Of a DNA stretch of 64,000 nt, positions 26,799 to 55,200 are shown one piece after another. Numbering within the stretch: position 1 is the first letter of the stretch; each line of letters begins with the position of its first letter. The notes beneath the pieces are model-generated. The model saw only the letters and a program-made list of their open reading frames with translations. It ran no database searches and had not been told where the DNA came from. The stretch spans positions 8,618,001 through 8,682,000 of the forward strand of contig OU015568.1 in the NCBI GenBank assembly GCA_907165135.1, given 5' to 3'. The position numbers were made by a program, and so were the translations under genes. The DNA is from Oikopleura dioica. Its lineage: Eukaryota; Animalia; Chordata.

Positions 26799-29700
26799 TT
26801 ATTTGTTTTTGCTATATTTTTTGATCTCCTCGCCGATCTTGTTGTCCACGCCCTTGATTTTTTGAATCAGCTCTTTTTGATCGCTGGTGGATTGAATGAG
26901 ATCGAAGACTTCTCTGAGCAGTTCGCGTTTCGCAGTTGCTACTTTTTTCTTCCCTGCTCGGGCCATCGTGTCTTTCAGGTCCTGAACAATTAGTTAGTTG
27001 TGTAACTGATAGGAATGGCCTCTTACCAAGGTGTAAGCCTTTCGCCACGCATCCTCCTTCTCCTTGAATTCATCAAGATTCCAGGAGTCGATATCCTTGT
27101 GGCATAGGCCGGGCTTGTCCCTCCAGCTTGACGGGAAGAAATTCTTCACCGTTTGATGGAGCTTTTTCATGTACTCCTTCTCTCTCTTCTCTACTCTCTC
27201 TCGTGCAGCCTTTTCTTTTTCAACAGTGCGCTCGAGTTCTAGCAAACGCTCCTCGAAGTTTTCCTCCGATTCTTTGCGATGCCGGCGCTTTGGCTACAGA
27301 AAAAGGGTCAGTAAAACCTTTTTGGAATCAAGGCAGACTCACCGGTGGGCTCTTTCCTCCATAATCGCTGTTGTCTTCTTCCGAGCTGTCACCAATCACT
27401 GCTCTGTGTCGATCAAAGCCAGAAGTCACCTCTGCTCCTACTGGCCCATGTCCAGAGCGTCTCTTTCTCAAGTTTCTCTTTCTGACAATAGGCTCGTCGT
27501 CCTCAGAATCCGAAATAATTCGACCTCGGTTCTGAATCGGTGCGTCGCGAATCACTGGCGGTGCTTTTCCACTCGCACTTGTCGTAGCGCCGTTGCCGTT
27601 TTCGCTTGTCTTGGCAGATGGCCGTTGGATTTTTCGACGCTCGGGAGAAACGGCGACTTCTTCGACATCGCGCGATTCCTTTTTGATTACGGGCAACATC
27701 TCGAGCGATTTCGTTGTGATGACTTCTTCGGCGTTTTTGCAGCTGTTGTATTTCTGAACGAAATAATAAATAAACATAAATATCTTTGGTTAAGAAAATT
27801 CTCTTTACAAAGTAATAAGAAAGTCGCTAGAAATTAGCACTTGGCTCGCACACACAAAGTGGGATTTACTTCTGGGTGACAAGAATGGCTTGACCAACGC
27901 TTGACTGAGAGTACTTACAGGATCGGTCAAATCCATGCAGATGAAATAGGCAGGATTCGCATCGTCTGGATTATTGACTTTTCGGAACTTGCCGCAGTCA
28001 TCTCTCGTGCACCGGAAAAATGGAGGTTGAGCCTTTAAAAATGTTGAAAAGAGTAGGTCGAGAAGTGCTTTTTACCTTCTCAACCGCCCGGTTTGTCGCC
28101 TGGGTTTCCTGTCTCTCGCACAATGGATCGCTGGTGGGGTAGCCGAACTGGCACCACTGCTCGAACTCGATTTTGATTCGCTTGTGGTAATCGTGCGCGC
28201 GATCTTGGCACAACTTCACAAGAGTCCTGAATTCAAAATTGATCATTCCATAAAACAACCAATAAAGTAATAAACATACAATCAAACGTACCTAAACTCT
28301 CTATCATCCGCGAATCGCTGCTTGCTCATGCTCGGCTGCATCAACGCTGCTGGAACATCCACCGCCGCCAAAACACCAAGAGGCCATTTCGCCATTTCCG
28401 GTCCTTCGACTTCAACGATGAGGCGATTTTTAGAGAAGATTCGGATCCCGGATTTTTGTCGCTCGCGGATGTTGTAGCCGAGGGTGAGGGTGAAATCGGT
28501 GACATTGGAGATTTTTTCCTTTTGCTTGATTTCCAGGTCGAAGCGGCGAATGTCACTCTCGTACTTGTCGACTGTCATGTTGAGCTTGCGAATTTGCTGG
28601 AGAGAGCTAGCGTTGGTGGACCCTTCTTTCGTCAAAGTGGCGATCTGAAAATGAGTTAATCAAGATTATAGATCCGTGGGTAAGTTTAGAAGATTAATCA
28701 GATTTCGTTTAGTTTCCGGCGAACTATCTTTAAAAAAGCCCAAGTTTCGTACGAAGGAAAAAAGTTTACTGTGCTTACCTCAGATTTGACTTTCTTGATC
28801 TTGTTCAATTTCTTCTTTTTCTGCTCTGTCAAGTCTGCGATTTTAGACTTAGCCGTCGATCGGAATTTGCCCTTTGGAAGATTGTATTTGCGTCTTTCGT
28901 ACATCAGATCGTAGATTCGAGTTGGGCGGATAAATTCGCCGCGGAGGAAGACTTGCATCTTAGGCTTAAGAATATGATGAAAAAGACGAAAAAAGCGTGA
29001 ATTCACCTTGAGGTAGAGGGTTGAGAGGTATTCTTTGAGAGATTTCGCCGCGTTTCCATGATCTCCAACATCGTGAATGTCGTTGTCGTCCAGCTCAGCG
29101 TTCAATTCTGGCTCGCCACTTTCATTCAGGTTGAGCTGGTAAAGAATGATGATGGTTCCTTGGCTTTCCAGGCCATAAAATTGCTCTAGAATGGAATTTT
29201 ATTTGAAGAATCTTCAAAGAAAGGACTAAAACTAGGTTTCTTACCAAGAAGAGTTTCCTCGTTGGAGAAGGGCGAGTAGCTCGTGATAAGATCGACTTCT
29301 GTCTCGTGTCGCATCTTTTCGTCTTTTTCTGGCTTTGATGGATCGTAAATGGGGCGATAGTTGACCGACCCGTCGCTTTCGTAGACCATCTTCCAGCTCG
29401 GCAGAGGGCAGATTACTTCGTTCTGAAAAAAAAGGAGACATTCTAGCACTGGAAGAGGAGATAACTCTTACATTTTCATTCTCATATCCAGCATGAGAGG
29501 ATTTAATGAATGTTTGAGAGATCATGAGTGCGGAGAGCTCGTCATCTTTGATCGACAAGACGAGGCAGTCGTTTCCAACTCTCATCGAGCCAGATTTTAA
29601 CCCGTTGCCGTACATGCCGATCATTTCTGGGTTGTCGTTCTTGCTCGAGTAGCCATAAGCGATGACGTTGAACATTTCTTTCGACGTCATTCCGCAGCTA

Positions 29701-30005: not shown

Positions 30006-31274
30006 CGCCCGAAAGAATTCCTCTTCGCTGTCTGAAAATCAAAATGATATGAATTTGATTTCAAGGTACAAATCAGGTAGTTACTTCTAATGAAAATCTC
30101 TCTTTTCTTCAATGTTTTTCTATTTTAGTTTTAAAAAGGAAGTTCTCTGTAGCCGATACAGTAGGTTCATTTCCTACGCCTTTTTCTCTAACAGACAGAA
30201 TACTAAAAAAGGGAAATTTGTAAAATTGGCGCGCACAGTTTTTTGCGCCGAATTGGCCAAGGCGCTGGGACAGAAGCCAATCAGCGCTGCGCTATTTTTT
30301 CCTTTAGGGACGGAAAATCGCGCTCTCGCGCTGCAGCTGATCATCGCGAAATCGGGACTCTAAGAGTAGATTGCCGGAATTGACAACTCAAACAAGCGGA
30401 TAGGCCGATTTCTGACAAGTACCAATCGACCCAATCTGATTGTTTTTTCTATCAGATGTTAACCCTTTTTATGATAATTAAAAAAAAAAGTTAGTCGTTA
30501 CCTTAAAAATCTAGCTTTTTAAAAAATACGAGCTCTCGAATCTCTTACGGTGATCGACTGAAGAAAGTCGTGAAAATATCGGACAGCTGAAATAAAATCT
30601 AGAAAGTTTCAATGACCTCTTCGATCGCGATTCTGGAATGAGCATTTTTTACCTTTTGAATCTTTCTTGTTCTGGTTGACCTGTTCGTCCATCTCCAGCA
30701 GCGTCAAAATATCAATCGGTTCATCATGTCTTACTGTACGAATCAAGTCCAAAATGGGAATATCATCCGAATCTGAAGCATTTCCGCCAGCGCGGCCATC
30801 ATCAGTTTCCTCCTCATCACTTGTAAAAGCTACAGTGATCTTTAGGTTCCGACATGGGTCTTCATCCCTCTTTTGAATCGTCGAGTTCGACACCTCTACT
30901 TGTTCCTTGGATCCCAGGGATTCCAAATCTGGAAAAAAAGTAGGGGTTGGTCACGTGTTTTGGCTCGAAATCGGCGATTTTTCATTTTGGGCCGGAGGAT
31001 TTTCACAAGTTTGTTAAACAATCCTCTGCCTCAGGCAAAACGGAGGTAACCAATGAAAAGAGCGCCCTTTTTTACCCTAGAATCCACCTTCAAACCTTCC
31101 GGCCTCGCTCTCATATCCCTAGAATGAACAAAAGTTTGGAACTTTCTTGTTTGTCGGAAAACACTGAGCGGAGGACTTTCGCTGGTGGAAGACCTCCTGG
31201 AAGACCAATATTAAAATAAATGAATAAATGACCTTCCTCGGTCAGTAAATGGCCACTTGAGGTCAACTTCGGTC

Positions 31275-31720
31275 ACTTTGTGCCGGAGGACCTTCCGGAG
31301 GACCCCTCTGATGGAAGACAAGCTGGTGGAAGACCAAGATTTAAAAACAAAAAAGAAATAAAATAAAGAGCTATGATTGGCTTGTTATTGCCGCTTATGG
31401 CCAATTTCGGCCGTTTTCTGCCGGAGGACCTCCCGGAGGACCTCCTTACTGGAAGACCAACTGCTGGAAGACCAATATAAAAAAAATAAATAAATAGCCT
31501 TGCTTGGTCACATATTGCCACATTTGGCCAACTTCGGCCGCTTTCTGCCGGAGAACCTCCCGGAGGACTCACTTACTGGAAGACAAACTGCTGGAAGACC
31601 AATATAAAAAAAATAAATAAATAGCCTTGCTTGGTCACATATTGCCACATTTGGCCAACTTCCGCCGCTTTCCGCCGGAGGACCTCCCGGAGGACTCACT
31701 AACTGGAAGACCAACTGCTT
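31275..31720. repeat. ~130-bp sub-repeat (4 copies) in the left foldback arm; mirrored at about 34400-34835
   Basis: Recurrent CCGGAGGACCT(C/T)CCGGAGGAC...GGAAGAC...CTG(C/G)TGGAAGACCAA...AAATAAATA...TTGGCCAA blocks. Confidence 0.8.
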
Positions 31721-31771
31721 GTAAACTTGTTGGGAATGAATCTGTCTGGGATAAAGACACGCAAGCACATA

Positions 31772-32400
31772 CAATTCAGTCAGGCAGGGGGCCAAGCCGA
31801 CCCGTAGGGGAGGCCACGCCTGTTTATTGAATTCAGTCAGGGACAGGGCGAAGCCGACCCGAAGGGGAGGCCACGCCTGTTTATTCAATTCAGTCAAGGA
31901 CAGGGCGAAGCCGACCCGAAGGGGAGGCCACGCCAGTTTATTCAATTCAGTCAAGGACAGGGCGAAGCCGACCCGAAGGGGAGGCCACGCCTGTTTATTC
32001 AATCCAGTCAGGGACAGGGCGAAGCCGACCCGAAGGGGAGGCCATGCCTGTTTATTCAATCCAGTCAGGGACAGGGCGAAGCCGACCCGAAGGGGAGGCC
32101 ACGCCAGTTGATTCAATTCAGTCAGGGACAGGGCGAAGCCGACCCGAAGGGGAGGCCATGTCTGTTTATTCAATCCAGTCAGGGACAGGGCGAAGCCGAC
32201 CCGAAGGGGAGGCAACGCCTGTTTATTCAATTCAGTCAGGGACAGGGCAAAGCCGACCCGAAGGGGAGGCCATGCCTGTTAATTCAATTCAGTCAGGGAC
32301 AGGGCGAAGCCGACCCGAAGGGGAGGCCATGCTTTTCATTCAATTCAGTCAGGGACAGGGCGAAGCCGACCCGAAGGGAGGCCACGCCGAGTTATTCGAT
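31772..32400 (+). repeat. 57-bp minisatellite, about 11 copies (left arm)
   Basis: Unit AATTCAGTCAGGGACAGGGCGAAGCCGACCCGAAGGGGAGGCCACGCCTGTTTATTC. Confidence 0.95.
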
Positions 32401-33056
32401 TCAATCAGAGAGAGAATGTAGCTGACCCAAAAGAGAGGCCACGCCCGTTTGTAAAATTAAGTCAGTTATTCTCTCTCGTGCTCGATGCTAGTGTTATTAG
32501 CTTCGCTAACTCTCTCCTTTTTCTGACTACAATAAATGCTAAGCTTATAACCCTAAACTTAATCTTAGATTAAACTCAACTACATTGCACCGCGGTTTAA
32601 AATCATTGACGAGGCTGAGAAATTATTCTTTATGTCGATTTTATTGCAGGATTGTAGAATCTGGACGTACAGGGCAGTATTTAAAATCTGAGAATATTAA
32701 AATTGATTTAAGCCCGAGTTTCTTGCTTCGAAGAGTTAAGCGCAGACCGGGCGGGCGCTCTCGCGAGTCGAGCGAATCTCGGGCCTGGGGCCTATTTCCG
32801 ATCGTCGACGAATCACGGCGCATTTGCGAGTTACTAACACTATCATCGAGAAAAAAGTAATAGAAAGAATTAATTTATCTAGACACTATGGTCAAGCTAT
32901 CTTCGTCCAAGAAATCGTGTTCATTTATACTTAATCGCATATTGTGAGAGCAAGGTTGGAATTTCTATAAATTAACTAGGGACCTTAGACGCATATGAAT
33001 TAAATTATTTTAAATGTGTCCGGGGAGAGCGAATATAGCAAAATCCGCCTGGATCT

Positions 33057-34340
33057 TCGGGTCGGCTTCGCCCTGTCCCTGACTGAATTGAATAAACAGG
33101 CGTGGCCTCCCCTTCGGGTCGGCTTCGCCCTGTCCTTGACTGAATTGAATAAACTGGCGTGGCCTCCCCTTCGGGTCGGCTTCGCCCTGTCCCTGACTGA
33201 ATTGAATAAACAGGCGTGGCCTCCCCTTCGGGTCGGCTTCGCCCTGTCCCTGACTGATTTGAATAAACAGGCGTTGCCTCCCCTTCGAGTCGGCTTCGCC
33301 CTGTCCCTGACTGAATTGAATAAACAGGCGTTGCCTCCCCTTCGGGTCGGCTTCGCCCTGTCCCTGACTGAATTGAATAAACAGGCGTGGCCTCCCCTTC
33401 GGGTCGGCTTCGCCCTGTCCTTGACTGAATTGAATAAACTGGCGTGGCCTCCCCTTCGGGTCGGCTTCGCCCTGTCCCTGACTGAATTGAATAAACAGGC
33501 GTGGCCTCCCCTTCGGGTCGGCTTCGCCCTGTCCCTGACTGATTTGAATAAACAGGCGTTGCCTCCCCTTCGAGTCGGCTTCGCCCTGTCCCTGACTGAA
33601 TTGAATAAACAGGCGTTGCCTCCCCTTCGGGTCGGCTTCGCCCTGTCCCTGACTGAATTGAATAAACAGGCATGGCCTCCCCTTCGGGTCGGCTTCGCCC
33701 TGTCCCTGACTGGATTGAATTAACGAGCGTGGCCTCCCCTTCGGGTCGGCTTCGCCCTGTCCCTGACTGAATTGAATAAACAGGCGTTGCCTCCCCTTCG
33801 GGTCGGCTTCGCCCTGTCCCTGACTGAATTGAATTAAAAGCGTGGCCTCCCCTTCGGGTCGGCTTCGCCCTGTCCCTGACTGAATTGAATAAACAGGCAT
33901 GGCCTCCCCTTCGGGTCGGCTTCGCCCTGTCCCTGACTGGATTGAATTAACGAGCGTGGCCTCCCCTTCGGGTCGGCTTCGCCCTGTCCCTGACTGAATT
34001 GAATAAACAGGCGTTGCCTCCCCTTCGGGTCGGCTTCGCCCTGTCCCTGACTGAATTGAATTAAAGCGTGGCCTCCCCTTCGGGTCGGCTTCGCCCTGTC
34101 CCTGACTGAATTGAATAAACAGGCATGGCCTCCCCTTCGGGTCGGCTTCGCCCTGTCCCTGACTGAATTGAATCAACGAGCGTGGCCTCCCCTTCGGGTC
34201 GGCTTCGCCCTGTCCCTGACTGAATTGAATAAACAGGCGTGGCCTCCCCTTCGGGTCGGCTTCGCCCTGTCCCTGACTGAATTCAATAAACAGGCGTGGC
34301 CTCCCCTACGGGTCGGCTTGGCCCCCTGCCTGACTGAATT
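33057..34340 (-). repeat. 57-bp minisatellite, about 22-23 copies (right arm, inverted)
   Basis: Reverse complement of the same unit. Diagnostic variants recur at 285-bp spacing (33136/33421 and 33256/33541). Confidence 0.95.
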
Positions 34341-35592
34341 GTATGTGCTTGCGTGTCTTTATCCCAGACAGATTCATTCCCAACAAGTTTACAAGCAGTT
34401 GGTCTTCCAGTTAGTGAGTCCTCCGGGAGGTCCTCCGGCGGAAAGCGGCGGAAGTTGGCCAAATGTGGCAATATGTGACCAAGCAAGGCTATTTATTTAT
34501 TTTTTTTATATTGGTCTTCCAGCAGTTTGTCTTCCAGTAAGTGAGTCCTCCGGGAGGTTCTCCGGCAGAAAGCGGCCGAAGTTGGCCAAATGTGGCAATA
34601 TGTGACCAAGCAAGGCTATTTATTTATTTTTTTTATATTGGTCTTCCAGCAGTTGGTCTTCCAGTAAGGAGGTCCTCCGGGAGGTCCTCCGGCAGAAAAC
34701 GGCCGAAATTGGCCATAAGCGGCAATAACAAGCCAATCATAGCTCTTTATTTTATTTCTTTTTTGTTTTTAAATCTTGGTCTTCCACCAGCTTGTCTTCC
34801 ATCAGAGGGGTCCTCCGGAAGGTCCTCCGGCACAAAGTGACCGAAGTTGACCTCAAGTGGCCATTTACTGACCGAGGAAGGTCATTTATTCATTTATTTT
34901 AATATTGGTCTTCCAGGAGGTCTTCCACCAGCGAAAGTCCTCCGCTCAGTGTTTTCCGACAAACAAGAAAGTTCCAAACTTTTGTTCATTCTAGGGATAT
35001 GAGAGCGAGGCCGGAAGGTTTGAAGGTGGATTCTAGGGTAAAAAAAGGGCGCTCTTTTCATTGGTTACCTCCGTTTTGCCTGAGGCAGAGGATTGTTTAA
35101 CAAACTTGTGAAAATCCTCCGGCCCAAAATGAAAAATCGCCGATTTCGAGCCAAAACACGTGACCAACCCCTACTTTTTTTCCAGATTTGGAATCCCTGG
35201 GATCCAAGGAACAAGTAGAGGTGTCGAACTCGACGATTCAAAAGAGGGATGAAGACCCATGTCGGAACCTAGTGATCTTCTTCCCGTTTCGAAGCTTAGA
35301 TGAGCGATAAAAAGACATTTTCAAGAGTCTATTTGTTCGAAAAATGAACTGGTAAAAAGTGAGGAAATCAGGCGCTTTATAAAGAAAGGAAGACTATTCT
35401 GGATTTATCAAAGGGTTGAGATCCGGTTTGAACTTGGTGCACCATTCTTTCATGAGTTATCGAGATATTCTTGATTGATTTGAGTGAAGTATGAACTTTA
35501 TCATTAAAATTTTTTCTGGAAAATCATAACAGTGAAAAGATAAGCTTCCAAATTCAAGCTTCGGATTTCTCGTCCACCATCGATTTCTCCAT

Positions 35593-36659
35593 CTAAAGTT
35601 GAAATTCTGCTTCGTCTTTTGCATCTTCTTCCTCAACTGCGCTCAATATTTGCGTTGCTCGGACGGCCTCAGATTTATTATCCTTATCGGGGGTTCCAGT
35701 AGCTTGAGATTGAGAAATTTCCATGTCTCCTGGCGCCGGAAAGATGAAAACGTCTGGATTCTCGATCGCTTTGTCTTGTTCGTAAGATTGGTAAAGAGAA
35801 GGAGCAGGGAAGGGCGTCAAGGGCTGGGGTTGCTGCTGAGCTACAGTGTTGACTGAAGGTTGAGTAGGAGGAACTGGTTCAGTTTGAAGCACATTTTCGC
35901 CGAGGAATTGATCTGACAGAGGCGCCACGGTCGTTAGGTTCAATGGATCCTTTGAAAATCAATGTTATCGAAGAAAATGATCAGTGTTATTTACGCGACA
36001 ACAGCAGGATGAGCCGTGAAAATTGGCCAAGAAGAAAGAGACGAACATGACGACCATGATACTCAAGAATTGAATCCCATGAAATGTGAAGAAAGAGATC
36101 AAAATCGCTAAAAATGTTTTGACAAGACGGAACGGTATGTTCATACCTTTTCCTAAGACGGCCTCCCAGTAGGAAGGGTACATGGAAACTTGGTAGACAT
36201 GCCAAGCCAGGGATGGTAAGATCCACAAGAAACCGATGATCGAAAGAGATCCAGAAAAATTGCCCTAGATCTCTCAGAAAATGAACACTGAAGGGAGAAT
36301 ACTTACGAGACATCCAGCAGCTCTGAATCTATTGAAGAATGGAGGTGGAGTGTGAAGTTTCGAAGCAACGATTCCTATACTTCCAGCAGCAATGGCGAAG
36401 ATTCCAACGACGATTCCGATTCCGAATGAGGGGATCAAATCGAGTCCGTTTTGCCATTTCACTTCAACAGCGAGGCAAAATGCATCGGATACAACAAGCA
36501 AAATGGAGAATACCAGTAGCACGATACTTTCAAAAGGCTTTTCGTGAACTCAGGCTTAGATAAGATGAAGTTTAAAAGCCCGAGTGCCTTAATCGTTTTG
36601 CCTGCTGTGTCAAAACTTGAAACATAATTCCGTCTCTCTTGAAAATACGCCAAATTCAC
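35593..36659 (-). CDS. Four-TM membrane protein (MS4A/CD20-like topology) with Pro/Gln-rich tail; 5' end uncertain
   Basis: Hydrophobic exons IVLLVFSILLVVSDAFCLAV, GIGIVVGIFAIAAGSIGIVAS, LSIIGFLWILPSLAW and ILISFF...SIMVVMFVSFFLA, followed by SSCCCR and a tail ending AEFQL*. Confidence 0.55.
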
Positions 36660-37769
36660 GCTGGTTAAAAATAGGAAAATACTCTTACGGATGCTGAGGA
36701 CGCTATTAGCCTTCCTGTCGTTTTTATACCTGGCTGCAATGTTTGATAACGATCGTCAATTTATATTATATTTGACGACTGTGATAGCCGAACACCACGA
36801 GATCCTACTGCCCTTGGAAACGTTCTATAAATTTATTCAAAGCAATATGCAGTAGCTAACGGGGTTATTCTCCTACGAGGTTATTTCCACTTTGAAAAAC
36901 AGACCAGTTTAGGATGTTTTTTGGATCAATCCGGGACCAAACCATCATTTTAAGATTGAGATCTTGGGTCGATCTTGGGTTCTCTATAAAAAGACAATAA
37001 TTGAGGATTACTTGAAGCATTTTGAATGATTCTTATATTGAGAAAATGTAGCGAGTAACCATTTGGAGCAATCAATAATCTTTACAAATAAAAACACTAA
37101 CACGCTAAAATGCAATTCATGAAAAACAAGTGGACCGCAATTATTTGTACCTTGTTATTGATCTGTACAATTTAAATAAAGATATCTAAAATTATGAAAT
37201 GATCTTTTATTACTTTTTTTATAGATCTTTAATTGAAATGACAAAAGGGAAGAAAGCATTTATATGACAGGCTCGTTGTTCAGAGAATGCCTTCTTCAAA
37301 TTATTTATCGGGAAAAGATAAAGTGAAATCATGGAGAAGAACTTTTTTGCAAAAATTTTCAACCTAGTTATTTTTTTTTATAAGATGAGGTTTTTGAGGT
37401 TAATCAAGAGATTAAAACTGCCGGAAATCGTAAGGCAGGCCTGAAACAGCGTGGGAAAGAAGGTGAAAATCGTGAAAAGTGAAAACAAGGAGAAGAATCA
37501 GGCGCGCTCATTGGGCGCCCCGTCTGGTGGTTCGATCGCTGCCCCTGATTCGACGACTTTTAGATTTCACAGAAACCCGGATTACTATTCCGTTCTAGAG
37601 AACGCACCACTTTTCATCCCATCCCATCTTATCACGAAAACGTAAGGGTAAAATGACGTCTCCCCCACTCTTTAATTTTCATTCATTTATTAAAAATTGT
37701 TAAATGTGCAAAAATCATTTTTATCTTTCAGATCTCTTCAGAAAAGAATTCACTTTTTGACGCGCAAAA

Positions 37770-40506
<2,737 letters not shown>

Positions 40507-40645
40507 AATGTCCCTCTTTTCAAAAAGTTCCTGAAAGAAAGCAACGACCTGATGATCCTGAAAAAATATAAAATATTTTTCCTCGCTGCCTTAGATTTTT
40601 ATTATAATCAGCCATGATCCTCTATTGAAACTTTTTCTTTTTCAG

Positions 40646-41637
40646 ATGGTCGAGTTAAAACTGAAATGCGTAACCTGCTCCGCTTCTTTTTCCTCCGACG
40701 AAATCTACAGCGCCCATCGGGAGGGGCATAAAAAGGCGGAAGAGTGGCTCCGGGTGAATTTGCCGAAATCGAAATCAACGAAGAGAAAACCGTCTCCAGT
40801 TAAGACCGTCATCGAGGAACCCCCACCCATGTCTATGATTCCTCTTGAATCACAAGGTATTAAAATTTTCTTCCAACCGCCTTTTCATCCCATTTTAGCT
40901 CAAGTTCTCCGACGAGCGGCGAAACCCGCCATTAGCCGTCGATCGGCCCCGATCATGCCAAGCCAAAGCTGGCGAAAAAGCGAACTCATGACAATCTTCT
41001 CGTCACTAGAACTCCCAGTCCCGCTCGCCCAGTCATCCGGAATACATTGAAGCGGTTAGAGCCAACTCCCGCACCAGCGGGTGAATCAGAATTCAACGCG
41101 CGGTTGATGGAATGCACGAATAAGCGAAAAGCGGAAATGCGAATGGACAAGGGTCTTCCACCGCTAAATCCGTACTATTGCCGCAATTTTATGCACAAGG
41201 AAAGGAGTTTGAAAAGTGATTGATGAAAATAATTCAGTAGAAGTTCGCTTGTCAAACTCAAAAATAGGACTGTTTCTTCAGCTCAATTTACTGGGCTTCA
41301 ATGCGACGACATTACGAATCTAAGCATCCTGAGACTCCACTGACCCTTCCTCCTTTGAAAATGCGCCACGCATGCGAATGTGGAAAGACTTTTCTTGAGC
41401 CAAATCGTCTTCAGGAATGCGATTTACAAATTTTCTGAAATAACTAAAGGAGAACTGTATTAACTAAACGAAAACAGTATTACTTTTTAAAAAGAGGGAT
41501 CATATTAAAAATCGCGAAAAAAGGAACACATGAAGTCCCAAAAACACATGTACCAACCAGACAAAAACAAAGTCCCCTACGAAAACGACGACTCGGTCAC
41601 CCACTGGCAAGACCTTGTTGACATGGAGGAAGCCTAA
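40646..41637 (+). CDS. Second, shorter C2H2 zinc-finger protein (tandem paralog-like); apparent 1-nt frameshift near 40960
   Basis: ATG directly after TTTTTCAG. Fingers CVTCSASFSSDEIYSAHREGH, YCRNFMHK|DCFFSSIYWASMRRHYESKH and CECGKTFLEPNRLQ|EHMKSQKH. Confidence 0.72.
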
Positions 41638-42818
41638 ACCCTATTTACTGCCCTAATTCTTTCTTGCACATGTGACATTTTTTTTGAATAAACAATCAAA
41701 CATGATCATCGAGAGGGACGATGTTGGCTGATACTCCACTTGAAGTGATCGTGAATTTGAATCAAGGGCAACCTTGCTTGGATTCTTGAAATTTTAGGGC
41801 GCTTTTTTGGGAATGGATTTCGGTCGGGAGAGGATTCAATTACAGGCGCTCCAGTCTCATGTCCAAATTTTAAAATGTCGCGTCAGAAGCACCTGACAGA
41901 AGTGTGAAAATCTAATTTAGCGGGCGGCTTACGTTTCTGTTGTGTACAAGCATTTGGGAACTGACGGGTCAAAAGGATAGCTGATGTTGGAAATAAGAAA
42001 TCTATGGTCAGATAAAATACTTCGTCGGATAGTTGCTGTGTTAGTTCAGTGTTAATTCATCAAAAATATGTTTTCTGAGAGAAAATACAAAGGTAGTTCG
42101 CTAATTGACCTATTTTCATAAAATTAAAGTTAAAGGTACAGGGCATCACTTGAAAAACTATCAAAAACGGAAAGAAATGCATAAAAAATTCATGCGCCAA
42201 ATGAAACGCGTGGGCGCACTATCCGCTCGCGGTGAATTGCCGCGGGGAAGAGCGCGCCCTCTTTGACTTGAGCTGCTTTCAGCGATTTCGAAATTTTTTC
42301 GTTTTTTCTACTACGCGCTTGACTCAGCGCTAGAAACTCACTTTCGGGCGTCATTTTTTTCTTCAAGAGATTTCTGGACGAAGAACTGAAGATTTTTAAG
42401 AGAATAATGAAATTGAGGAAGACCGGAGAAAAGAACAATTCTAGTGGATAATGATAAGGCTTCGAAATTTAGCATTTTTCGAAAGAAAATAGTTGGAAAA
42501 TCTCAATTTTCAGACTTTCGCTAAAAAATAATCTTTTTCACTGAGAAATATTTAATCGTGTATATTTGAAAATGTTATTAGAAGTAAGATAAAGTGAATC
42601 ATCACTGATTTTAAAAGAAAAATGAGGAAAAATATGGAATGTCGCTGATTTATTTGTCGAACATATCGATTTCGTGGCGTTTTTTTTTTAATTTTGCAAA
42701 AAGAAAGAATTGTAAAGTTCCTGTTAATTAGGCGTATAATTAAAATTGACCGTTGGTGACCTCAACTGACTGTAATTACAAACAAAAAGCGACAAGAGAT
42801 TATTTTTTCGGAGCCAAA

Positions 42819-45800
42819 ATGAGCCCTTCGCCCAGCGGCGAATCCAGCCGGAACTTCTTGTCGAACGATCAGAGCAAAACTCGGCGCCCTTCGAAAGCTT
42901 CTCAGGAAAAGGGATGGAATGAAAAGACGATTATCGATGGCCTCCTCCTCGGTTTATGACCTTTTACGGGTGTTTGAGGGTTAAATAGAAATGTTGAGAG
43001 GCGGTTGATTGATGATAATTAGCGCGAGATTTATTACCAGCGAGGAGAGTTATTTGTCAAGTTTTTTTTTCGAAGGAAAAATGTAACCCATCATTAGCAG
43101 GAAAAATGGCCTTGCAAATATTCTCACTGCTTATTTTCTGTTTACAGTAGGGCTCGCCAAAAAAAAGTCGATGTCGATTCTCCCTTACGAATTTTATCTT
43201 AAAATGATCCCCGTTCTTTTCTGATTCAAATGATGTGCTTATGTCACTCGTAAGTCTTGGGGAAAAAATTCTAGAGCTAGGCCGAAATTCCAGTTTTTGG
43301 ACTTCAATAACGTGCTATGACGTCATCTTTTCGGAAATTTCAATATTTTTTTCAATTTTTTAGCGTAACTTTTTATGCTCTTTTAAATAAGCTACCTTAG
43401 GTACTTTCAAGGGGAGAATCAGGATTTTGACTAAAAATCTTCGCTCAAAATCCTTGAAATTCACCATTTTTTGGCCTCGTTTCAACCTAGAAAACCTTAA
43501 ATATCTCGAGTTCCCCAATTTGCCCCCGCGCGGCAAAGGGCGCAAATAAAGCGCAATGATCTGTTCTATAGGTGATTAATCTCAGATCTACGGAGAATCC
43601 AAGTTAACCATGAAAAAAATTCGAATAACTGATAAAAAAATATCTGAAATTTCGATTTTTCTTCAGAAAAGACCAATTTTTTTTCAGAAGATGTTGTCAT
43701 CAGACCCTCAACGAACCCTTAAATTGAAGCTCAGAATCTAAGCTACAAGTAGAAGTCAATTAAAAGCGCTCTTTTAAGATTTCGTTTGATTATTTTTATA
43801 GAAAACCAATCAGTACCCGAAAAATAGCCATTTTTATCGAAAATTCGCTCTAAAAATTTTTCGCCTGACTTTAAGGGTATGGTTTTATGGGGAGTTTTGG
43901 GTTTTAGAACATGGAGAACAAGAAAAACATAACTGCTGACAGTTTTAAGTTTTCTTGGCGAGCCCTAGTTTACAGTACAAGTTCTACTGCAAACAAACTC
44001 AAGCATTACGTAAGCCAGATTTTTTTTCGCGAAATTTGCTCAAAAATCGAGCTGAGCTGAGCTAGATTTTTTGAGCTGGCTCAGCAAGGTCTGTCAGCCC
44101 AAAATTGAACAAGTTACAACTACAAAAGTAAGTGGCTGGCTGTCAAAATCCATTAGATTTTATGATCAAGCAGATGTGATTTGTTTCCGAATAGCTCGCA
44201 AACATTTTAGATGGATAAGAATTTGATTTGGTAGGAAAATCTTATCGCCAATTATTGATTGATTTTTAGATGAAATTCTTTACCTTTTGGTATTAAATTT
44301 CTTCTAATAAAACCCCGATAACTGGCGATAGAAATGCCTTATCAAATCTGAAGCTTCGAGATTATTCGTATTAAATTTTAAATATTTGCAAATTGCAAGC
44401 TACTCGAAAAATTCCTCCGGCTTGGCTGCTGAGAATAAAAGCTCAGGGGTTTCTCATGTTTGCCTGTAGCCGGGTTTATTTACTGTAGAAAGATAGCTGA
44501 TTCAGGGAGATTATCCTACACTAGTAACGCGCACTTGAGCACCTGAAACTGCGCATTTTTTGTTTACCAAGCTTGTGCTTTTGTTTCTCGAGGAGCTAGA
44601 ATAAAAAATGGTAATTCTAGCTCTAGCGGTAAAATAGAAAATCACTCAACGAAGGTAATAATATTTTTAGAGGCACGCGCGGCAAACGCATAAAAACGGT
44701 ATTTCAAATGGACGTAAATTTAAATGTCATTCAATTTTCTCGCTACTGGAACAAAATTTTCTCATGAAAAATCAAGCAATAGCTCCAGTAAAAGAAGGAC
44801 ACAAGAAACTTGAATTCGCGGGGAATGAGCTTATCGATCTCCTTATCAAATTATATTTCCCGCTGCGCGTAGAATTACCAAACACGATAACGCAGACCTA
44901 GGGTATCTGTTATCATCCCTTCCCACAGACGTATGCAACCAGAATTTGACAAATGTTATCCGGCAACTTTCCTGCCTCGCCGGCCATGCGGAAGAAATCC
45001 TCGGCGAGCATGCTGGCGAACTTTGGGTTCGAAACGAACGAATTCGCAAAATATCCGTTCGCGTAGATGCACTCACGGAGAAAATTAAAAGTCTAAATCC
45101 GAAAACATCAGGTAAGCAATCTTGAAATCATAGAAGAGTACCAAAACCGGATCAATATTTATCCGAATCTTAGATTAGCGGCTGCTAGTTTGATTTCATT
45201 AATCTTGAGATAATATTGAATAATATTCTAGCGGCGGAATAAATCTATTTTAAAACCAACCCGATTCTTATGTTATTTTTAGCGCAACTTCAAAACACGC
45301 CGCGGCGGGTCGTCTCCACTCCTCCTTTCAGGTCGCCCTCTCATGTAGAACGCCGTCTCTTCGCCATCAAAAGCCGTCCACAAAGGTCTGTCTCTTGCTA
45401 TAAATTCTTGATAGCGATGATTATCTTCAGTGTAGTCAGACTGCAGAGACAGCGTTTATTTTAAATGTCACAAAAAACGGCCGAGCTGGGGGATCGATTT
45501 TCTCGCGAAATAATCATCCCAGGGAACTCCCAAAGGGTGGAAATTGTAGCTAAGGGTCTAATCTGTGGCATGGTGGGGTTTAAAAATTCTAGAGATGAGT
45601 CATTATTGCGTAATTGACCTCTAAAGTTGAACTTCTCTAAAAATCGCCATTTTCCCTTTTCTAAAGGGCCGTTTCCCTTTTCTGAAAGAGAAGAACATCT
45701 TTCTAGACTCTCTCTCTCTTTTTTCCAGAATAAGGCCACCATTCAGGCCCCTTCGATAATTTCACGAAACTTAACTAAAAAAAAATAAAATAAAAACCAT

Positions 45801-48800
45801 AAAAAAACCAAAAATAGGGACAAAGTAAATTTTTAAATCAGATGGAGGTGGGCGGGGTTGGGGACGCAACTGAGAATGATCAACTCAGGCTCCTCCCGGC
45901 CTTTGTCAAGCCCCTTAAATTTGAAAATCAAGGGACGGGGCTGAAACGGCCCGAAGGGCCGTCAAGCCCCTTAAATTTGAAAATCAAGGGACGGGGCTGA
46001 AACGGCCCGAAGGGCCGTCAAGCCCCTTAAATTTGAAAATCAAGGGACGGGGCTGAAACGGCCCGAAGGGCCGTCAAGCCCTTAAATTTGAAAATCAAGG
46101 GACGGGGCTGAAACGGCCCGAAGGGCCGTCAAGCCCCTTAAATTTGAAAATCAAGGGACGGGGCTGAAACGGCCCGAAGGGCCGTCAAGCCCTTAAATTT
46201 GAAAATCAAGGGACGGGGCTGAAACGGCCCGAAGGGCCGTCAAGCCCTTAAATTTGAAAATCAAGGGACGGGGCTGAAACGGCCCGAAGGGCCGTCAAGC
46301 CCCTTAAATTTGAAAATCAAGGGACGGGGCTGAAACGGCCCGAAGGGCCGTCAAGCCCCTTAAATTTGAAAATCAAGGGACGGGGCTGAAACGGCCCGAA
46401 GGGCCGTCAAGCCCCTTAAATTTGAAAATCAAGGGACGGGGCTGAAACGGCCCGAAGGGCCGTCAAGCCCTTAAATTTGAAAATCAAGGGACGGGGCTGA
46501 AACGGCCCGAAGGGCCGTCAAGCCCCTTAAATTTGAAAATCAAGGGACGGGGCTGAAACGGCCCGAAGGGCCGTCAAGCCCCTTAAATTTGAAAATCAAG
46601 GGACGGGGCTGAAACGGCCCGAAGGGCCGTCAAGCCCCTTAAATTTGAAAATCAAGGGACGGGGCTGAAACGGCCCGAAGGGCCGTCAAGCCCCTTAAAT
46701 TTGAAAATCAAGGGACGGGGCTGAAACGGCCCGAAGGGCCGTCAAGCCCTTAAATTTGAAAATCAAGGGACGGGGCTGAAACGGCCCGAAGGGCCGTCAA
46801 GCCCCTTAAATTTGAAAATCAAGGGACGGGGCTGAAACGGCCCGAAGGGCCGTCAAGCCCCTTAAATTTGAAAATCAAGGGACGGGGCTGAAACGGCCCG
46901 AAGGGCCGTCAAGCCCCTTAAATTTGAAAATCAAGGGACGGGGCTGAAACGGCCCGAAGGGCCGTCAAGCCCCTTAAATTTGAAAATCAAGGGACGGGGC
47001 TGAAACGGCCCGAAGGGCCGTCAAGCCCTTAAATTTGAAAATCAAGGGACGGGGCTGAAACGGCCCGAAGGGCCGTCAAGCCCCTTAAATTTGAAAATCA
47101 AGGGACGGGGCTGAAACGGCCCGAAGGGCCGTCAAGCCCCTTAAATTTGAAAATCAAGGGACGGGGCTGAAACGGCCCGAAGGGCCGTCAAGCCCCTTAA
47201 ATTTGAAAATCAAGGGACGGGGCTGAAACGGCCCGAAGGGCCGTCAAGCCCCTTAAATTTGAAAATCAAGGGACGGGGCTGAAACGGCCCGAAGGGCCGT
47301 CAAGCCCCTTAAATTTGAAAATCAAGGGACGGGGCTGAAACGGCCCGAAGGGCCGTCAAGCCCCTTAAATTTGAAAATCAAGGGACGGGGCTGAAACGGC
47401 CCGAAGGGCCGTCAAGCCCTTAAATTTGAAAATCAAGGGACGGGGCTGAAACGGCCCGAAGGGCCGTCAAGCCCCTTAAATTTGAAAATCAAGGGACGGG
47501 GCTGAAACGGCCCGAAGGGCCGTCAAGCCCCTTAAATTTGAAAATCAAGGGACGGGGCTGAAACGGCCCGAAGGGCCGTCAAGCCCCTTAAATTTGAAAA
47601 TCAAGGGACGGGGCTGAAACGGCCCGAAGGGCCGTCAAGCCCCTTTAATTTGAAAATCAAGGGACGGGGCTGAAACGGCCCGAAGGGCCGTCAAGCCCCT
47701 TAAATTTGAAAATCAAGGGACGGGGCTGAAACGGCCCGAAGGGCCGTCAAGCCCCTTAAATTTGAAAATCAAGGGACGGGGCTGAAACGGCCCGAAGGGC
47801 CGTCAAGCCCCTTAAATTTGAAAATCAAGGGACGGGGCTGAAACGGCCCGAAGGGCCGTCAAGCCCCTTAAATTTGAAAATCAAGGGACGGGGCTGAAAC
47901 GGCCCGAAGGGCCGTCAAGCCCTTAAATTTGAAAATCAAGGGACGGGGCTGAAACGGCCCGAAGGGCCGTCAAGCCCCTTAAATTTGAAAATCAAGGGAC
48001 GGGGCTGAAACGGCCCGAAGGGCCGTCAAGCCCCTTAAATTTGAAAATCAAGGGACGGGGCTGAAACGGCCCGAAGGGCCGTCAAGCCCCTTAAATTTGA
48101 AAATCAAGGGACGGGGCTGAAACGGCCCGAAGGGCCGTCAAGCCCCTTAAATTTGAAAATCAAGGGACGGGGCTGAAACGGCCCGAAGGGCCGTCAAGCC
48201 CCTTAAATTTGAAAATCAAGGGACGGGGCTGAAACGGCCCGAAGGGCCGTCAAGCCCCTTAAATTTGAAAATCAAGGGACGGGGCTGAAACGGCCCGAAG
48301 GGCCGTCAAGCCCCTTAAATTTGAAAATCAAGGGACGGGGCTGAAACGGCCCGAAGGGCCGTCAAGCCCCTTAAATTTGAAAATCAAGGGACGGGGCTGA
48401 AACGGCCCGAAGGGCCGTCAAGCCCCTTAAATTTGAAAATCAAGGGACGGGGCTGAAACGGCCCGAAGGGCCGTCAAGCCCCTTAAATTTGAAAATCAAG
48501 GGACGGGGCTGAAACGGCCCGAAGGGCCGTCAAGCCCCTTAAATTTGAAAATCAAGGGACGGGGCTGAAACGGCCCGAAGGGCCGTCAAGCCCCTTAAAT
48601 TTGAAAATCAAGGGACGGGGCTGAAACGGCCCGAAGGGCCGTCAAGCCCCTTAAATTTGAAAATCAAGGGACGGGGCTGAAACGGCCCGAAACATTAATT
48701 TTTATCAAAAAAGAGTCGAAAAACCATTGAAAATGGTGTATCAGATGTAAAGTTTTGATATTTTGGGGTCAATCGAGGTCATGTGACCTCAGATGACCTT

Positions 48801-51632
48801 TTATGTTCGTTTATTTTAATCAGCATCAAAAAACAATCAAAATGATGTATGGGACATTATAGTTCCTTGCAGAAAGAAATGAAAGGTCATTTGAGGTCAG
48901 GTGACCTCAACTGACCTCAGACGAAAAAAAGGAAGAAAAATGACGTCGATTGATGGTAAAATCGACGTTTCTATCAATATTATATGTAATTACTCTATAT
49001 CAGGATGAATTACGTAATATTACGTAATTATGACTTATCACTAGAACTTATAAACCCCCCTAAGCCACAGATTAGACCCTAAGCTACAATTTGCGCCCTT
49101 GGGGGACTCTCCATGATGGATATTCTCGGAGAAAATGGATCCCCCAACTTCTGTGACATTTAAAATAAACGCTGTCAGAGCAAGTTGAACATCAACGAGG
49201 ATCCGTTACTTCAGCCATTTGAAGTGAGAAATGGACGATCTGGATCGATGATCAGGCCTAGGTCGCTTGAAAGCGATATTCTTCTCTTATCACTGCCACG
49301 GTACGTATTCTTGAAATCGTGGATCATTTGCGAAAGCTGGTCAATACGCCCAAAGCCCTTTTTCCACCATTTGACTACTGTTTCAGACAAAATTCCGCAC
49401 AATCCAATTCTCCACTGACGCAAATGATAATCAACCCACCAAGTACTCGTCCATCCGAGTCGCTCCCCTCTCCAATCTTCGGCAATCATCAACAAGTCGA
49501 TCCTACCGACCCGCAAAGAACAATCAGAAGAACAAACACGACCGCCACATGTGGCGCCGCTCAATTACCACCGAGCAAAGGCCGTCTCCTCCTTGATTCC
49601 GACGCTTCGACATCCCCGGAGCGGTCCAAGACCACCCATTCTGTTTCTGACATTCATGGCTTCGGTGACACGCGGCTTGCGCTGGTCCGGCGGTCGATGA
49701 TCGCACGGCGCACCCAGCAGCGACTCAGAGAGAAGCGCAGACGAAATCGAACGGTCGCACTTTCGCCTGAAGATGATCGAAGATCCAGCTTTATATCTAC
49801 TTTTCTCGATCAGAAATCGTTAGAAGACAGGTCCACACAAATCCCAAGCCAGCCGTCAACCCTTTCGAAAGAAGCAGAAGAAGCCACCAAGCAGCCTGAA
49901 AAACTGGGCGATCTAAACTCGACACTGACGGCCACTTCTCCAACGCAAATTAAAGAACCGCTAAATATGAACAGCTTGGTGCTACAGGCAGAAAACAATG
50001 AAAGCTCTTCCGGTTATTGGACGGGAGGCAGCACGATTCAAACTCTTCCTGATCGCTGTGTGCAAGAACTGAACGATCATAACCTCATGAAGCACAACTC
50101 TCGCTTCAATAATCACTCCTCCATCAGCGACCATCGCACCTTCTCTCCCCTGCTACAATCAGCAAAATCAGAATTCAGCACGACGGATTCCGAGCCGCTC
50201 CTCTTCGCGCGTCCCAAACCACCACCACCCTCACGCTCAGATTCAATCCCAAACTCGCACTCTGACTCGCAACCGCAAAGTCCCTCGCCCGAGCCGCTCT
50301 TGATTGAAAGGCCCTCGACACTCGTTGGTCTATCGGACAGCTACTTGAGCGCTGTCAATAGCTGCGAAATGTCTGTACTGACGCCGTCTGACGCTTCAGA
50401 ATCAGGCATTTCCTCAAATTTGGAGCAGTTCGCTTTTCCATCTCCTCCAAAGGTAACAAATATTATCACCCAAAAAATGCTATTTCTATTTCTAGAACAT
50501 CCCAAAATCGCCAACTAAAAATCCCCTCCCACCATCGTCTTGCAATCCAATGCAAGATGAACTAGCTGCGCGACTTTTCCACCGCCGCTCAAAGATCGAA
50601 CGAATTGAAAACGGCGAAGAAGAGGCATTTGAAAAGCCTGCTAGAACCTTCTCTTCACCAGAGCCAGAAAAGGTTTCTCTTTCGCCAGTTTCAAGCCCTA
50701 GAAAAGTCTCACCGAAGAAGATTCTTTTCGGAGCCCCCTCAAGCCCGGCGAAAAGTGACAGCACGCTAGAAGAAGACTCGATAGGAAAAGGTCGAAAGTA
50801 CACTGATAAGATTTTCTTGCTAAGCAACCAAAAAAAAAGCTCTTTTCTTTCAACCTTTCGAAAGAAATCACTGTCATCGAGAATCCCAACCGGGCTTTAT
50901 CAGATACTTCTGAAACCGAGCCGCTGCCAAAACCGGAAGACGATGAAGTCTTCGAACGAACCTCTTCCCCTGCTTCACTTTCCCCAATCCGTTCTTCGTC
51001 AGTTTCGCCTGGAAGAAGACCAGCTGGACTTGGCTTAGGCTTGAGAGCCACTCAAAGCTTATCTTCTAGAGGCCGCTCGGATTCAAGACGCGCGAAGAAT
51101 CTCTTGACAAAGGTTCATATCTTGCCAAAGAAGCGGCCAATAAAAATGATTTTAGAATAACACAGCGAATTTCAAATCCCTTCTTCTCCAAAACATCTCA
51201 GGAGGATCAAAGAAAGATCGAATATCCGCCGCAGAAAGACTCAAAGTTCAACCTGGCCAAACTCTTCAGGATCTTTACAAGCCAAAATCAGACTCAGCAT
51301 CAAGTCCGAATCGGTCAAAATCGGAGTCATTAACAACTGATCAAAGGTATCATCAAGCCTTTTTTCTCAACGATTACAGTAATTTTAGCCCGAAAAGACG
51401 GAACAAATCGAAAAACCGCTTCAACTCGGCCCACCGCCTGACCTCTATCGTTGAAGAAAAAGACCTCCAAGCGGCGAAAGAATTCTATCAAAACAACTAC
51501 TGTAATACAAACGGAGACAACTGTAACGATTCTACCGCTACTGCAAAAACGGAAAACTGTACTACCACTAATGACAACTGTACGAGCTCAGAACAACCCG
51601 CCGCCGATCAAAAGAATCAGACAGCAGTTTGA
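42819..51632 (+). CDS. NHS/NHSL-family (WAVE-homology domain) actin regulator; exon 3-4 region interrupted by a TIR element
   Basis: PFAQRRIQPELL...FS|DVCNQNLTNVIRQLSCLAGHAEEILGE...VDALTEKIKSLNPK is WHD-like. The long Ser/Pro-rich exon has LREKRRRNRTVA, SSGYWTGGST and PPPPSRSDSI. Ends QTAV* at 51632. Confidence 0.72.
43148..43967. mobile_element. 820-bp hAT-type MITE in the NHS-like first intron
   Basis: TIR TAGGGCTCGCCAA...TTGGCGAGCCCTA. Exact 8-bp TSD GTTTACAG (43140-43147 and 43968-43975). Confidence 0.87.
45449..49175. mobile_element. 3.7-kb non-autonomous TIR element carrying a 56-bp satellite
   Basis: The outer 24 bp form a perfect inverted repeat (ACAGCGTTTATTTTAAATGTCACA). Imperfect inverted similarity continues for about 160 bp (45449-45612 versus 49019-49175). 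Flanking direct repeat CAGAG (45444-45448 and 49176-49180); an AGA repeat is possible if the ends are 1 bp further out. Confidence 0.8.
45905..48691 (+). repeat. 56-bp satellite, about 50 nearly identical copies
   Basis: Unit AAGCCCCTTAAATTTGAAAATCAAGGGACGGGGCTGAAACGGCCCGAAGGGCCGTC. A few 55-bp copies have CCC instead of CCCC, and one has an A>T change near 47646. Confidence 0.97.
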
Positions 51633-52259: not shown

Positions 52260-55200
52260 ATGTCGTCGATTCTTCGGTCGGAAGAGATGTGCCTAGCACA
52301 GCTCTTCTTGCAGGTAAGAAAACTCAAGTTTAGACCGATGATTTTATTCAAATTTTGATAAAATTGGCTTTCGTTTCATTTTTTCCTAGTCCGATGCCGC
52401 TTATTCCTGCATTTCTGAGCTTGGCGAACTTGGTCTGGTTCAATTTCGCGACTTGAACGCTGATGTCTCCGCGTTCCAGCGCAAGTTTGTTCCAGAACTT
52501 CGCCGCTGCGACGAGATGGAAAGAAAACTTCGCTACTTGGAAGAAGAGCTTCAAAAGCCGATATTCCGGTCATCGACAACAATGAGAGTCCCGAAGCTCC
52601 CTTGCCTAAGGAAACGCTTCCTTTGGAAAACGACCTGGAACAGCTGGAGAAGCAGATGCGCGAAGTCTCGCAGAATCAAGAACAGCTAAATAAGAACTTT
52701 TCTGAATTGACGGAGCTCAAGCACGTTCTCCGAAAAACCCAGGTCAGTCTGAGCAAGTAGCCATCTTTCAACCCCTTTTCAGAGCTTTTTCGAAGAAGCC
52801 CAAGACTTCGCAGCGCAACGACCGGGCGCTGTCGATCCCGAAACTGGCGAAGAAGAAAGAATTCGGTTACTGAACAGGCCCGCTCACTTCAGATCCATTA
52901 AAAACTTTCATATTGTTATTTTTCATGTTTCACGCGGCTCTGATTTGCTGCACGAGGAAAAACGCATTCGGAAACAAAAAATCGGCCAAGGCGTTTTTCT
53001 TTCTTAATTTTCTTGTCACGTGCATGTTCTTATTTGATGATTACCCATTCCAAGTATTCTCCGAGCATGAAACCTTCAACTATATTTGGTGAATTTTGAT
53101 TAATCTCCTCGTATTCGTCTTGTAAGTCTGTATAAGTCTGATTGTTCATTCTTCGTTTCCATTTTGGGCCGATTAGGTGTTGGCTTAGCCGCTCACAATT
53201 GACGGTACTAGTCGCTTCCGCTTGAAAATTGTGTGTAGGGGAAAAGGTGCTAAACAAATCACGTATCAGTATCAATTTTTACGCAAAAAACTAGAATAGT
53301 GGGTAGATCATCGGCCCTTGCCACATCTTCTTTGGATTGTAATTGAGCCCAAGAATAGCACTGGACATGAGGAGATGTCTACCAATCCTCTTCGACTTGG
53401 ATTCATTGCTGGAGTCATTGTCCGAGAGCGCATTCCGCTCTTTGAACGAATACTCTGGCGAGCCTGCCGAGGTTAGAATTCCGTTTCGATCGATTTGTTT
53501 TAAGAAATGTTTCTTAGGAAATGTATTTTTGCGTCACATCGAAATCGATACACCCCTGAAAGACCCTGTTACTGGACATGAAGTTCACAAGTCCGTGTTT
53601 ATCATCTTTTACCAAGGTATTCCCCAAAGCGTAGATTCACTTTTGCAAGACTTTTCTAGGTGAACAGCTCAGAAGCCGAACAAAGAAAATCTGCGAGTCG
53701 CTCAAAGCCTCGATCTATCCCTGCCCGGAAAACCCTCAAGAGCGCCGCGAAGTCGCTATGAATGTCATGACCCGTATCCAAGACCTCGATCAAGTTCTGA
53801 AAACGACGAACGAGCAGCGAAATCGCATCCTCGCCCAGGTCGCGCGAAACATTCGAGTCTGGTTCATCAAGGTTCGAAAAGTCGCTGCAATTTACCACTC
53901 GCTGAATATGTTCTCCGTTGATCTTGGTCAACGATGCCTGATTGGCGAAATCTGGTGCCCAGTGGCTGAGATTGATCGGATACAACTAGCCCTGCGTCGT
54001 GGAACTGAGCGCTGCGGAGCTTCTGTCAACTCCATTCTTCACCGAATCAAGACGAACATGACCCCTCCGACGTATTTCCGCACGGACAAATTCACCACCG
54101 GTTTCCAGGCCATCATCGAAGCCTATGGCGTCGCTGACTACCGCGAAATTAACCCTGCTTTCTTTACCATCATCTCGTTCCCGTTCCTCTACGGAGTTAT
54201 GTTCGGTGATATGGGCCACGGAATCATCATGGCTTTGGTCGCTGCATTCATGTGTTGGAAGGAAAATGAAATCGGGCGGAAAAAGGACTTGAACGAAATG
54301 ATCGAGATCTTGTTTAGCGGACGCTATATCATTCTGCTCATGGGCTTGTTCTCTACCTACGCCGGTTTTATCTACAACGATATTTTCTCCAAATCTTTGA
54401 ATATCTTCGGCTCTTACTGGACTGTCAGTGACCAACCGGGCATAGAAGATTGGCTGAAAACTGCTCCCGCTGAATCTACGATCCAATTGAACCCGAACTA
54501 CACCTCTGACGGCCCGTATCCTTATGGAATGGACCCGATCTGGCAGCTTTCTAGCAATAAGATCGTCTTCATCGACTCGTTCAAGATGAAGGGCTCCGTT
54601 ATCTTGGGAGTCACTCACATGTGCTTTGGCTTGGTTCTTTCTTACTTTAACCACAAGCACTTCAACGATCACGTGACGATCATTTGGGAGTGGATTCCTC
54701 GATGTCTCTTCATGGGCTGCATCTTCGTCTATCTCTGCTTGACTATCTTCATCAAGTGGATATTCTGGGATGCAACGACTTCTGGCAGTGCTCCTTCTTT
54801 GTTGATCAATCTTATTGGCATGTTCATGTTGAAGACTCCAACAAAGGATGATAACACATGGGTCTACGGTTCCCTAAATGCTGACGGAGAAGCGACGGCG
54901 CAAGGATTGGTTCAGAAGTTCTTGCTTTTCATCGCCTTTGCCAGCTTGCCAGTTATGCTCTGTGCCAAGCCGTACATCAAGTACAAGGAGTGGAAGGACC
55001 GACGAAACCGGAGCACGGCCAATTTTGGCGGAGTCCGAGTTGAAATCGAAGGCAACGACGATACAGAAGGAATCCTCGACGGAGACGAGCTTGCGCGTGA
55101 AAACACTCAAGAACAGCCTCAAGAAGAAGTTGAAGAGTTCGATATCGGCGGAATGGCGATTCTGCAGATTATTCACACGATCGAATTCGCGCTTGGTTGC

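Follow-up and report, generated by a model that had tools for sequence, protein, structure and literature searches.

We have examined a 64,000-nucleotide window of the Oikopleura dioica genome (contig OU015568.1; all coordinates are positions within this window) that contains two different non-autonomous transposons with terminal inverted repeats (TIRs), each carrying an internal tandem array of a unit of about 56 bp that is predicted to form a hairpin. One is a foldback-type element whose inverted arms hold a 57-bp unit, and the other, which we refer to as E2, encloses fifty copies of a 56-bp unit that is itself a major satellite of the genome, with on the order of ten thousand units. This arrangement fits best with what is already known of how transposons and satellites interact, and we incline, by a small degree, to regard the two units as distant relatives in one lineage-specific library of hairpin satellites. 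The findings extend an established link and add no new kind of mobile module, but they do provide a concrete and apparently recently active case in which a TIR element has taken 2.8 kb of a major satellite with it into a gene, in an apparently very compact genome of a marine animal whose satellites and centromeres are poorly known.

Anatomy of the foldback element and E2

The features of the foldback element are as follows, with tandem arrays called by Tandem Repeats Finder (TRF) at a score of 50.

30843-35271: foldback-type non-autonomous TIR element, 4429 bp, with complementary arms, both ends read, and open reading frames (ORFs) in repeats only
30835-30842 (left) and 35272-35279 (right): 8-bp target-site duplication GTGATCTT, exact in both flanks
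31264-31719, plus strand: 127-bp tandem repeats of the left arm, with a mirror copy at 34394-34916 (TRF, blastn)
31772-32465, plus strand: 57-bp array of the left arm, 12.2 units, the outermost and innermost being degenerate (TRF)
32466-33054: unique centre, 589 bp, with a self-match only in blastn
33055-34341, minus strand: 57-bp array of the right arm, 22.6 units, the reverse complement of the left array (TRF)

The termini of the element are TAGGTTCC.../...GGAACCTA, and its arms, which are about 1.6 and 2.2 kb long and consist mostly of tandem repeats, each run from about 420 bp of unique sequence through the 127-bp repeats to the 57-bp array, with 99% complementarity across the outer 1.2 kb. 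Inverted tandem-repeat arms, a short unique centre and a flanking target-site duplication are the attributes of a foldback element, and the 8-bp duplication and the terminus TAGGT are those of the hAT group, whose termini follow a consensus of the YARNG type, such that by sequence criteria this would be a hAT-like non-autonomous foldback. The target duplication of the Drosophila FB element is 9 bp, and the transposase family involved here may therefore be a different one. The 57-bp arrays change length in place, because the two arms hold 12 and 22.6 units and because a block of five units (285 bp) is exactly duplicated in the right array, where 33055-33386 is identical to 33340-33671. No long ORF is present outside the repeats of the element. 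We note that a CCGAAG-type motif is also present in the 127-bp repeat, whose score against the 56-bp unit is weak (z 2.75, p 0.02), and that reconstruction of the empty foldback site (30609-30842 joined to 35280-35400, minus strand) gives a frame that is open across the junction and encodes an acidic, serine-rich peptide, a putative exon.

E2 is organised differently, with a single array between leader and tail sequences.

45449-49175: E2, non-autonomous TIR element, 3727 bp, defined by its TIRs, the duplication CAGAG (45444-45448 and 49176-49180) and a junction contig with 0 differences in sequencing run X1
45449-45614, plus strand: left TIR and subterminal inverted repeat, with its partner at 49019-49175
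45800-45904, plus strand: leader 5' of the array, in which a degenerate proto-unit (about 45826-45853) accompanies an A-rich tract, a G-run motif and a short palindrome (alignment, read depth)
45905-48691, plus strand: 56-bp array, 49.9 units, 99% matches (TRF)
48692-49018, plus strand: tail 3' of the array, with AGGTCA/TGACCT palindromes (sequence, blastn)

The TIRs of E2 are 28 nt long and 96% complementary, their first letters being ACAGCGTTT, and the subterminal inverted repeats reach about 167 nt at 78%. The target duplication is 5 bp (CAGAG), or reads as 3 bp (AGA) if the TIR begins one base earlier, and E2 is a TIR element of unassigned class. Its array is nearly uniform, with 40 of the 50 units identical, eight lacking one C of a C4 run, one with a substitution, and the last truncated. 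The leader aligns to the 56-bp unit (p 0.014), and directly 5' of the array there are at least four G-tracts forming a G-quadruplex-like motif (45843-45866). The palindromes of the tail (48764-48919) have the form AGGTCA-NN-TGACCT, resembling nuclear-receptor half-sites, and are predicted to form a long hairpin; a sub-threshold match to the Rfam plant microRNA precursor MIR7993 at 48778-48907 (44 bits, with 100 required) is almost certainly just this tail palindrome.

An earlier, first-pass annotation of this DNA regarded the two host elements as unrelated, with different termini and duplications, and reading the ends and flanks bears this out. With 9-nt words, blastn detects nothing shared by the foldback element and E2 outside the arrays, and Smith-Waterman alignments of the leaders and tails flanking the arrays are at shuffle level, with no common leader or flank. 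Because the termini and the duplication lengths (8 bp as opposed to 5 or 3 bp) differ, the two elements have very probably been moved by different transposases. Neither contains a credible ORF outside its repeats, ORFs of the E2 and foldback arms have no protein match by exact look-up or by homology, and the translated frames of the 57-bp arrays (19 codons per unit) match nothing among 5.8 billion proteins. The annotation had proposed a search for autonomous relatives, and within the window there is no such partner, with no transposase domain in any ORF of at least 150 amino acids.

Abundance of the 56-bp satellite and the E2 insertion

Abundance was gauged by mapping the Logan contigs of three DNA runs, X1 and X4 (both labelled organism A) and X6 (labelled organism B), onto the stretch 45250-46350, which includes eight units of the 56-bp array.

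Single-copy flank, word depth: 172 in X1, 129 in X4, 65 in X6
E2 arms relative to flank: about 1-4-fold in X1, 5-20-fold in X4, 4-30-fold in X6
Last 60 nt of the E2 leader relative to flank: 18-fold in X1, 125-fold in X4, 132-fold in X6
Peak of the 56-bp array, word depth: 1.05 million in X1, 2.07 million in X4, 1.07 million in X6

The array peak stands at about 6,000-16,000 times the depth of the flank across the three runs, and the depth summed over the eight mapped units corresponds to about 0.6-1.9 Mb equivalents, a figure to be taken as an order of magnitude and not as a copy number. Between 2,849 and 15,743 contigs map per run, and the family is variant-rich because these thousands of contigs are mostly 90-99% alike. 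The 56-bp unit thus has the properties of a satellite in all three runs, namely head-to-tail arrays, high abundance, and thousands of variant contigs. The genome-wide majority unit differs from that of E2 by a G>A change at index 18 (90-96% of depth) and a second G>A change at index 29 (61-80% of depth), which converts AGGGAC to AGGAAC inside the core shared with the 57-bp unit. The E2 array is therefore a minor subfamily of the satellite, since the majority variant departs from it at two positions, and a very homogeneous one, since 40 of its 50 units are identical.

Read depth climbs along the E2 leader toward the array; the loose contig ends at 45899 are diverged copies of the leader, and others exit the array into unrelated sequence. 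These loose ends, together with an array depth far above that of the arms, place most 56-bp units in diverged relatives of E2 or outside such elements altogether. The suggestion in the annotation that the repeat is its own module, shuttled between transposon families, is in agreement with this excess of the unit over the E2 arms, but transfer between families is not seen.

Words from the E2 arm and from the 57-bp array occur in the same few runs, namely X1, X4, X5, X6 and one marine metagenome. Many DNA runs with the same species label (X27-X35) hold no 57-bp array words, whereas the organism-B run has them; the E2-arm word search listed no DNA runs comparable to X27-X35. The 57-bp repeat is therefore lineage-restricted, and the species label appears to span deeply diverged lineages.

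E2 lies inside the ORF of a plus-strand gene (45270-45448 and 49181-49418) whose product resembles the NHS/WAVE-homology region at its N-terminus. Deletion of E2 together with one copy of CAGAG rejoins both sides in frame, with the reading frame continuously open. Of the three runs compared, the junction contig with 0 differences is present in X1 only, at a depth of 42.5, about a quarter of the local depth, as against 113.6 for the alternative haplotype, and both X4 and X6 have two non-reference haplotypes beside the site. The insertion is probably private or polymorphic, and this copy of E2 looks recent, in view of its intact duplication, its near-identical units and the restriction of the junction to X1. 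PolyA RNA reads are present on the flanking gene at 45287-45397, and within the mapped stretch there are none on the E2 arm or the 56-bp array.

Similarity of the two units and its origin

According to the first-pass annotation the two elements carry the same minisatellite. The cores it quoted are exact, and across this shared 28-nt core the 56- and 57-bp units match at 24 of 29 alignment columns, with unit lengths that TRF confirms to be nearly equal. A degenerate pattern spanning both cores has 73 matches, all within the three arrays, and 0 matches in metagenome, viral and prokaryote-genome collections. The annotation proposed comparison with shuffled sequences, and the similarity withstands it: the highest local score, with every rotation and either strand allowed, is 29, compared with a mean of 14.5 (standard deviation 2.5) for dinucleotide shuffles (n=1000), of which 0-1 per 1000 attain that score. 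The pair is also an outlier among all tandem-repeat consensus pairs of the window (z 6.6), and the 5' part of the core (AGGGAC-N-GGGC...), taken by itself in fixed register without the CCCGAAGGG tip, gives a p of 0.0036.

The resemblance extends to the arrangement of the units, in which segment order is equal and an AT-rich linker is followed by a G-rich lead (AGGGAC) and then by an imperfect GC hairpin, some 35 nt long, whose tip is C-GAA-G. DNA folding predicts equivalent imperfect hairpins for both, with energies of -10.8 and -14.5 kcal/mol (z -2.7 and -3.0). Every 57-bp unit contains the heptamer GCGAAGC, and the 56- and 57-bp units alike contain CCGAAGG as part of CCCGAAGGG, located where the predicted hairpin has its tip; the two heptamers have been described as 'extraordinarily stable' DNA mini-hairpins (PMC13037366), and the unit consensus sequences conform to the GCGNAGC / C-GAA-G motif as defined there. 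Outside the arrays of the two elements the window contains no GC triloop hairpins. Among the 57-bp units of the foldback element, variable sites tend to be fewer in the core (3 of 28 positions) than in the rest (9 of 29), although this trend is not significant (p 0.10). A permissive Rfam scan of 30.7-49.3 kb places no family on either unit and returns only a sub-threshold microRNA-like palindrome and a weak small nucleolar RNA match. A looser pattern describing the hairpin only has at least 120 single matches in unrelated soil and gut contigs, none of them tandem, and we take these to be chance occurrences.

There are several ways to account for these data. In the one that we marginally prefer, the two units are distant relatives, and very stable mini-hairpins forming on single-stranded DNA would favour polymerase slippage and unequal exchange, through which arrays would expand and contract in place; TIR elements enclosing an array would copy it to new sites, where the transported arrays may seed further ones. 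We infer the common descent of the two units, their amplification through hairpins, and which way sequence passed between transposon and satellite. Of the roles envisaged in the annotation, that of a satellite spread by hitch-hiking TIR elements agrees best with the data, and such spread has been described before. A number of observations weigh against common descent, or limit how far it can be pressed. When random units are built with the AT linker, the G-rich lead, both GC stems matched in composition and the C-GAA-G triloop fixed, 2.5% of them reach the observed score (p 0.025). The 28-29 nt outside the core are at shuffle level (p 0.24-0.64), identity over the whole unit is 40 of 61 columns, and when the majority variant of the 56-bp unit is compared with the 57-bp unit the similarity falls to a score of 24 (z 4.9). 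No intermediates between the two units, which the annotation had expected if they were connected, were recovered in the window, in public collections or among the mapped contigs. Hairpin formation is itself a prediction from in-silico folding and slippage a presumption, summed contig depth serves as an order of magnitude and is not equivalent to copy number, and depth was measured for the 56-bp unit, with the 57-bp unit covered by run presence. Because half of the unit has no significant similarity, the two do not qualify as the same minisatellite, and because the hairpin-aware null gives a p of 0.025 and half of the unit is dissimilar, we consider the sequence case for common descent to be moderate, not strong.

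Some of these same observations are what would be expected if the arrays had arisen independently, with the combination of GC stem, C-GAA-G mini-hairpin and AT linker being prone to amplification and hence surviving as arrays. The modest p value under the structure-preserving null and the dissimilarity beyond the core are consistent with such convergence, as are the degenerate proto-unit in the E2 leader, which suggests local birth or decay of an array, and the ease with which the hairpin-only pattern arises by chance in large databases. However, the AGGGAC-N-GGGC lead is common to both units in the same register to the triloop even though a hairpin does not need it (the p of 0.0036 above), the unit lengths are almost equal, and the window lacks GC triloop hairpins beyond the arrays of the two elements, and we regard convergence as possible but on the whole doubtful. 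It is unlikely that selection maintains the core to bind a protein or prime replication and that it passes as a cassette from one transposon family to another, as the functional roles offered in the annotation would have it. The core is nominally the least variable part of the 57-bp units, mini-hairpins of this type are found at some phage and plasmid priming sites (PMC13037366), and the 56-bp satellite exceeds its host E2 in abundance, but the variability difference is non-significant, the majority 56-bp variant is altered within the core itself (AGGGAC to AGGAAC), the array has neither polyA transcripts nor an Rfam match, neither a transfer event nor a transfer junction was seen, and no protein is known to bind it. 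Both hosts are non-autonomous TIR elements with internal arrays in the same lineage, as they would be if they were diverged copies of one element family with arrays inherited from a common ancestral element; their lack of similarity outside the arrays, and termini and duplications that imply different transposases, largely refute this, and we give it hardly any credence.

The preferred reading, that of distantly related hairpin satellites amplified in place and dispersed by TIR elements, suggests a rule in which units with GNA mini-hairpins are those that amplify. If one connected monomer family were to span several transposon backbones, the system would be a clean one in which to follow satellite birth from transposons and dispersal by them. 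A more speculative proposal, which we think improbable, is that the G-rich lead and the C-GAA-G core constitute a cis-acting amplification signal, either recognised by a protein of replication, repair or chromatin or acting as a strongly slippage-prone DNA hairpin, which different transposon families have repeatedly acquired and which decides which sequences become satellites, possibly including the centromeric repeats of this lineage.

Relation to known systems and other features of the window

It is established that foldback and MITE-like elements can bear internal arrays which grow in place and seed or sample satellites (PMC4079207, PMC3879986). Tetris of Drosophila virilis, with its TIR-220 satellite (PMC4079207), resembles the foldback element in being non-autonomous with long inverted arms of internal tandem repeats, and its repeats also form much larger satellite-like arrays, with a modular architecture and rearranged copies as seen here. 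It differs in that its units are about 220 bp, whereas those described here are about 56 bp, are predicted to form hairpins, and in the foldback element are bounded by a target duplication and ends that are both hAT-like; furthermore, the abundant satellite here, the 56-bp unit, resides in a different TIR element that is not a foldback.

The closest parallels to E2 are the pearl, DTC84 and DINE-1 MITEs (miniature inverted-repeat transposable elements; PMC3879986), which like E2 have a tandem array at their centre and, on either side of it, modules bearing inverted repeats. In DTC84 and pearl the flanking modules serve as a 'cassette' for the repeats and a palindrome lies in a low-variability segment of every repeat, and distant similarities have been noted among the core repeats of different elements and satellites, as is the case here (PMC3879986). 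Helentron-borne arrays in oyster (PMC7492417) belong with the tandem-repeat MITEs to which we liken E2. The pearl, DTC84 and DINE-1 elements insert at an AA target, have a tetranucleotide microsatellite beside the array and at most about five repeats, each of about 160 bp, and have a probable Helitron/Helentron affinity, whereas the duplication of E2 is 5 bp (or 3 bp), its TIRs are 28 nt long and its repeats number 50, each of 56 bp, and TRF at a score of 50 reports no microsatellite at the edges of its array. We therefore suggest that E2 works like the pearl and DTC84 elements, but we do not file it as a member, because it is without both the AA target and the microsatellite.

The mini-hairpins d(GCGAAGC) and CCGAAGG (PMC13037366) are exact heptamers of the units described here, although the known examples are single sites at phage or plasmid priming or promoter regions and synthetic oligonucleotides, whereas here the setting is that of eukaryotic satellite units and the folding is predicted. 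There is also a likeness to the CENP-B box (discussed in PMC3879986), a short conserved motif common to otherwise dissimilar satellites, the motif here being known from sequence alone.

A third, small foldback-like element is situated at 5461-5961, with an AT-rich centre of 267 bp between inverted arms of 117 nt that are 87% complementary; each arm has about three 17-bp tandem motifs of the TTGCCTCTCGTGGCAAG type, which resemble subterminal transposase-binding repeats. Host genes with very long exons occupy 13195-27837 and 53758-55695, encoding a serpin, a VPS15-like kinase/WD40 protein, an ELYS nucleoporin and V-ATPase subunit a, and gene structure in the window is compact and intron-poor. 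For the V-ATPase a subunit, identity to the Ciona, amphioxus and vertebrate proteins is about 51%.

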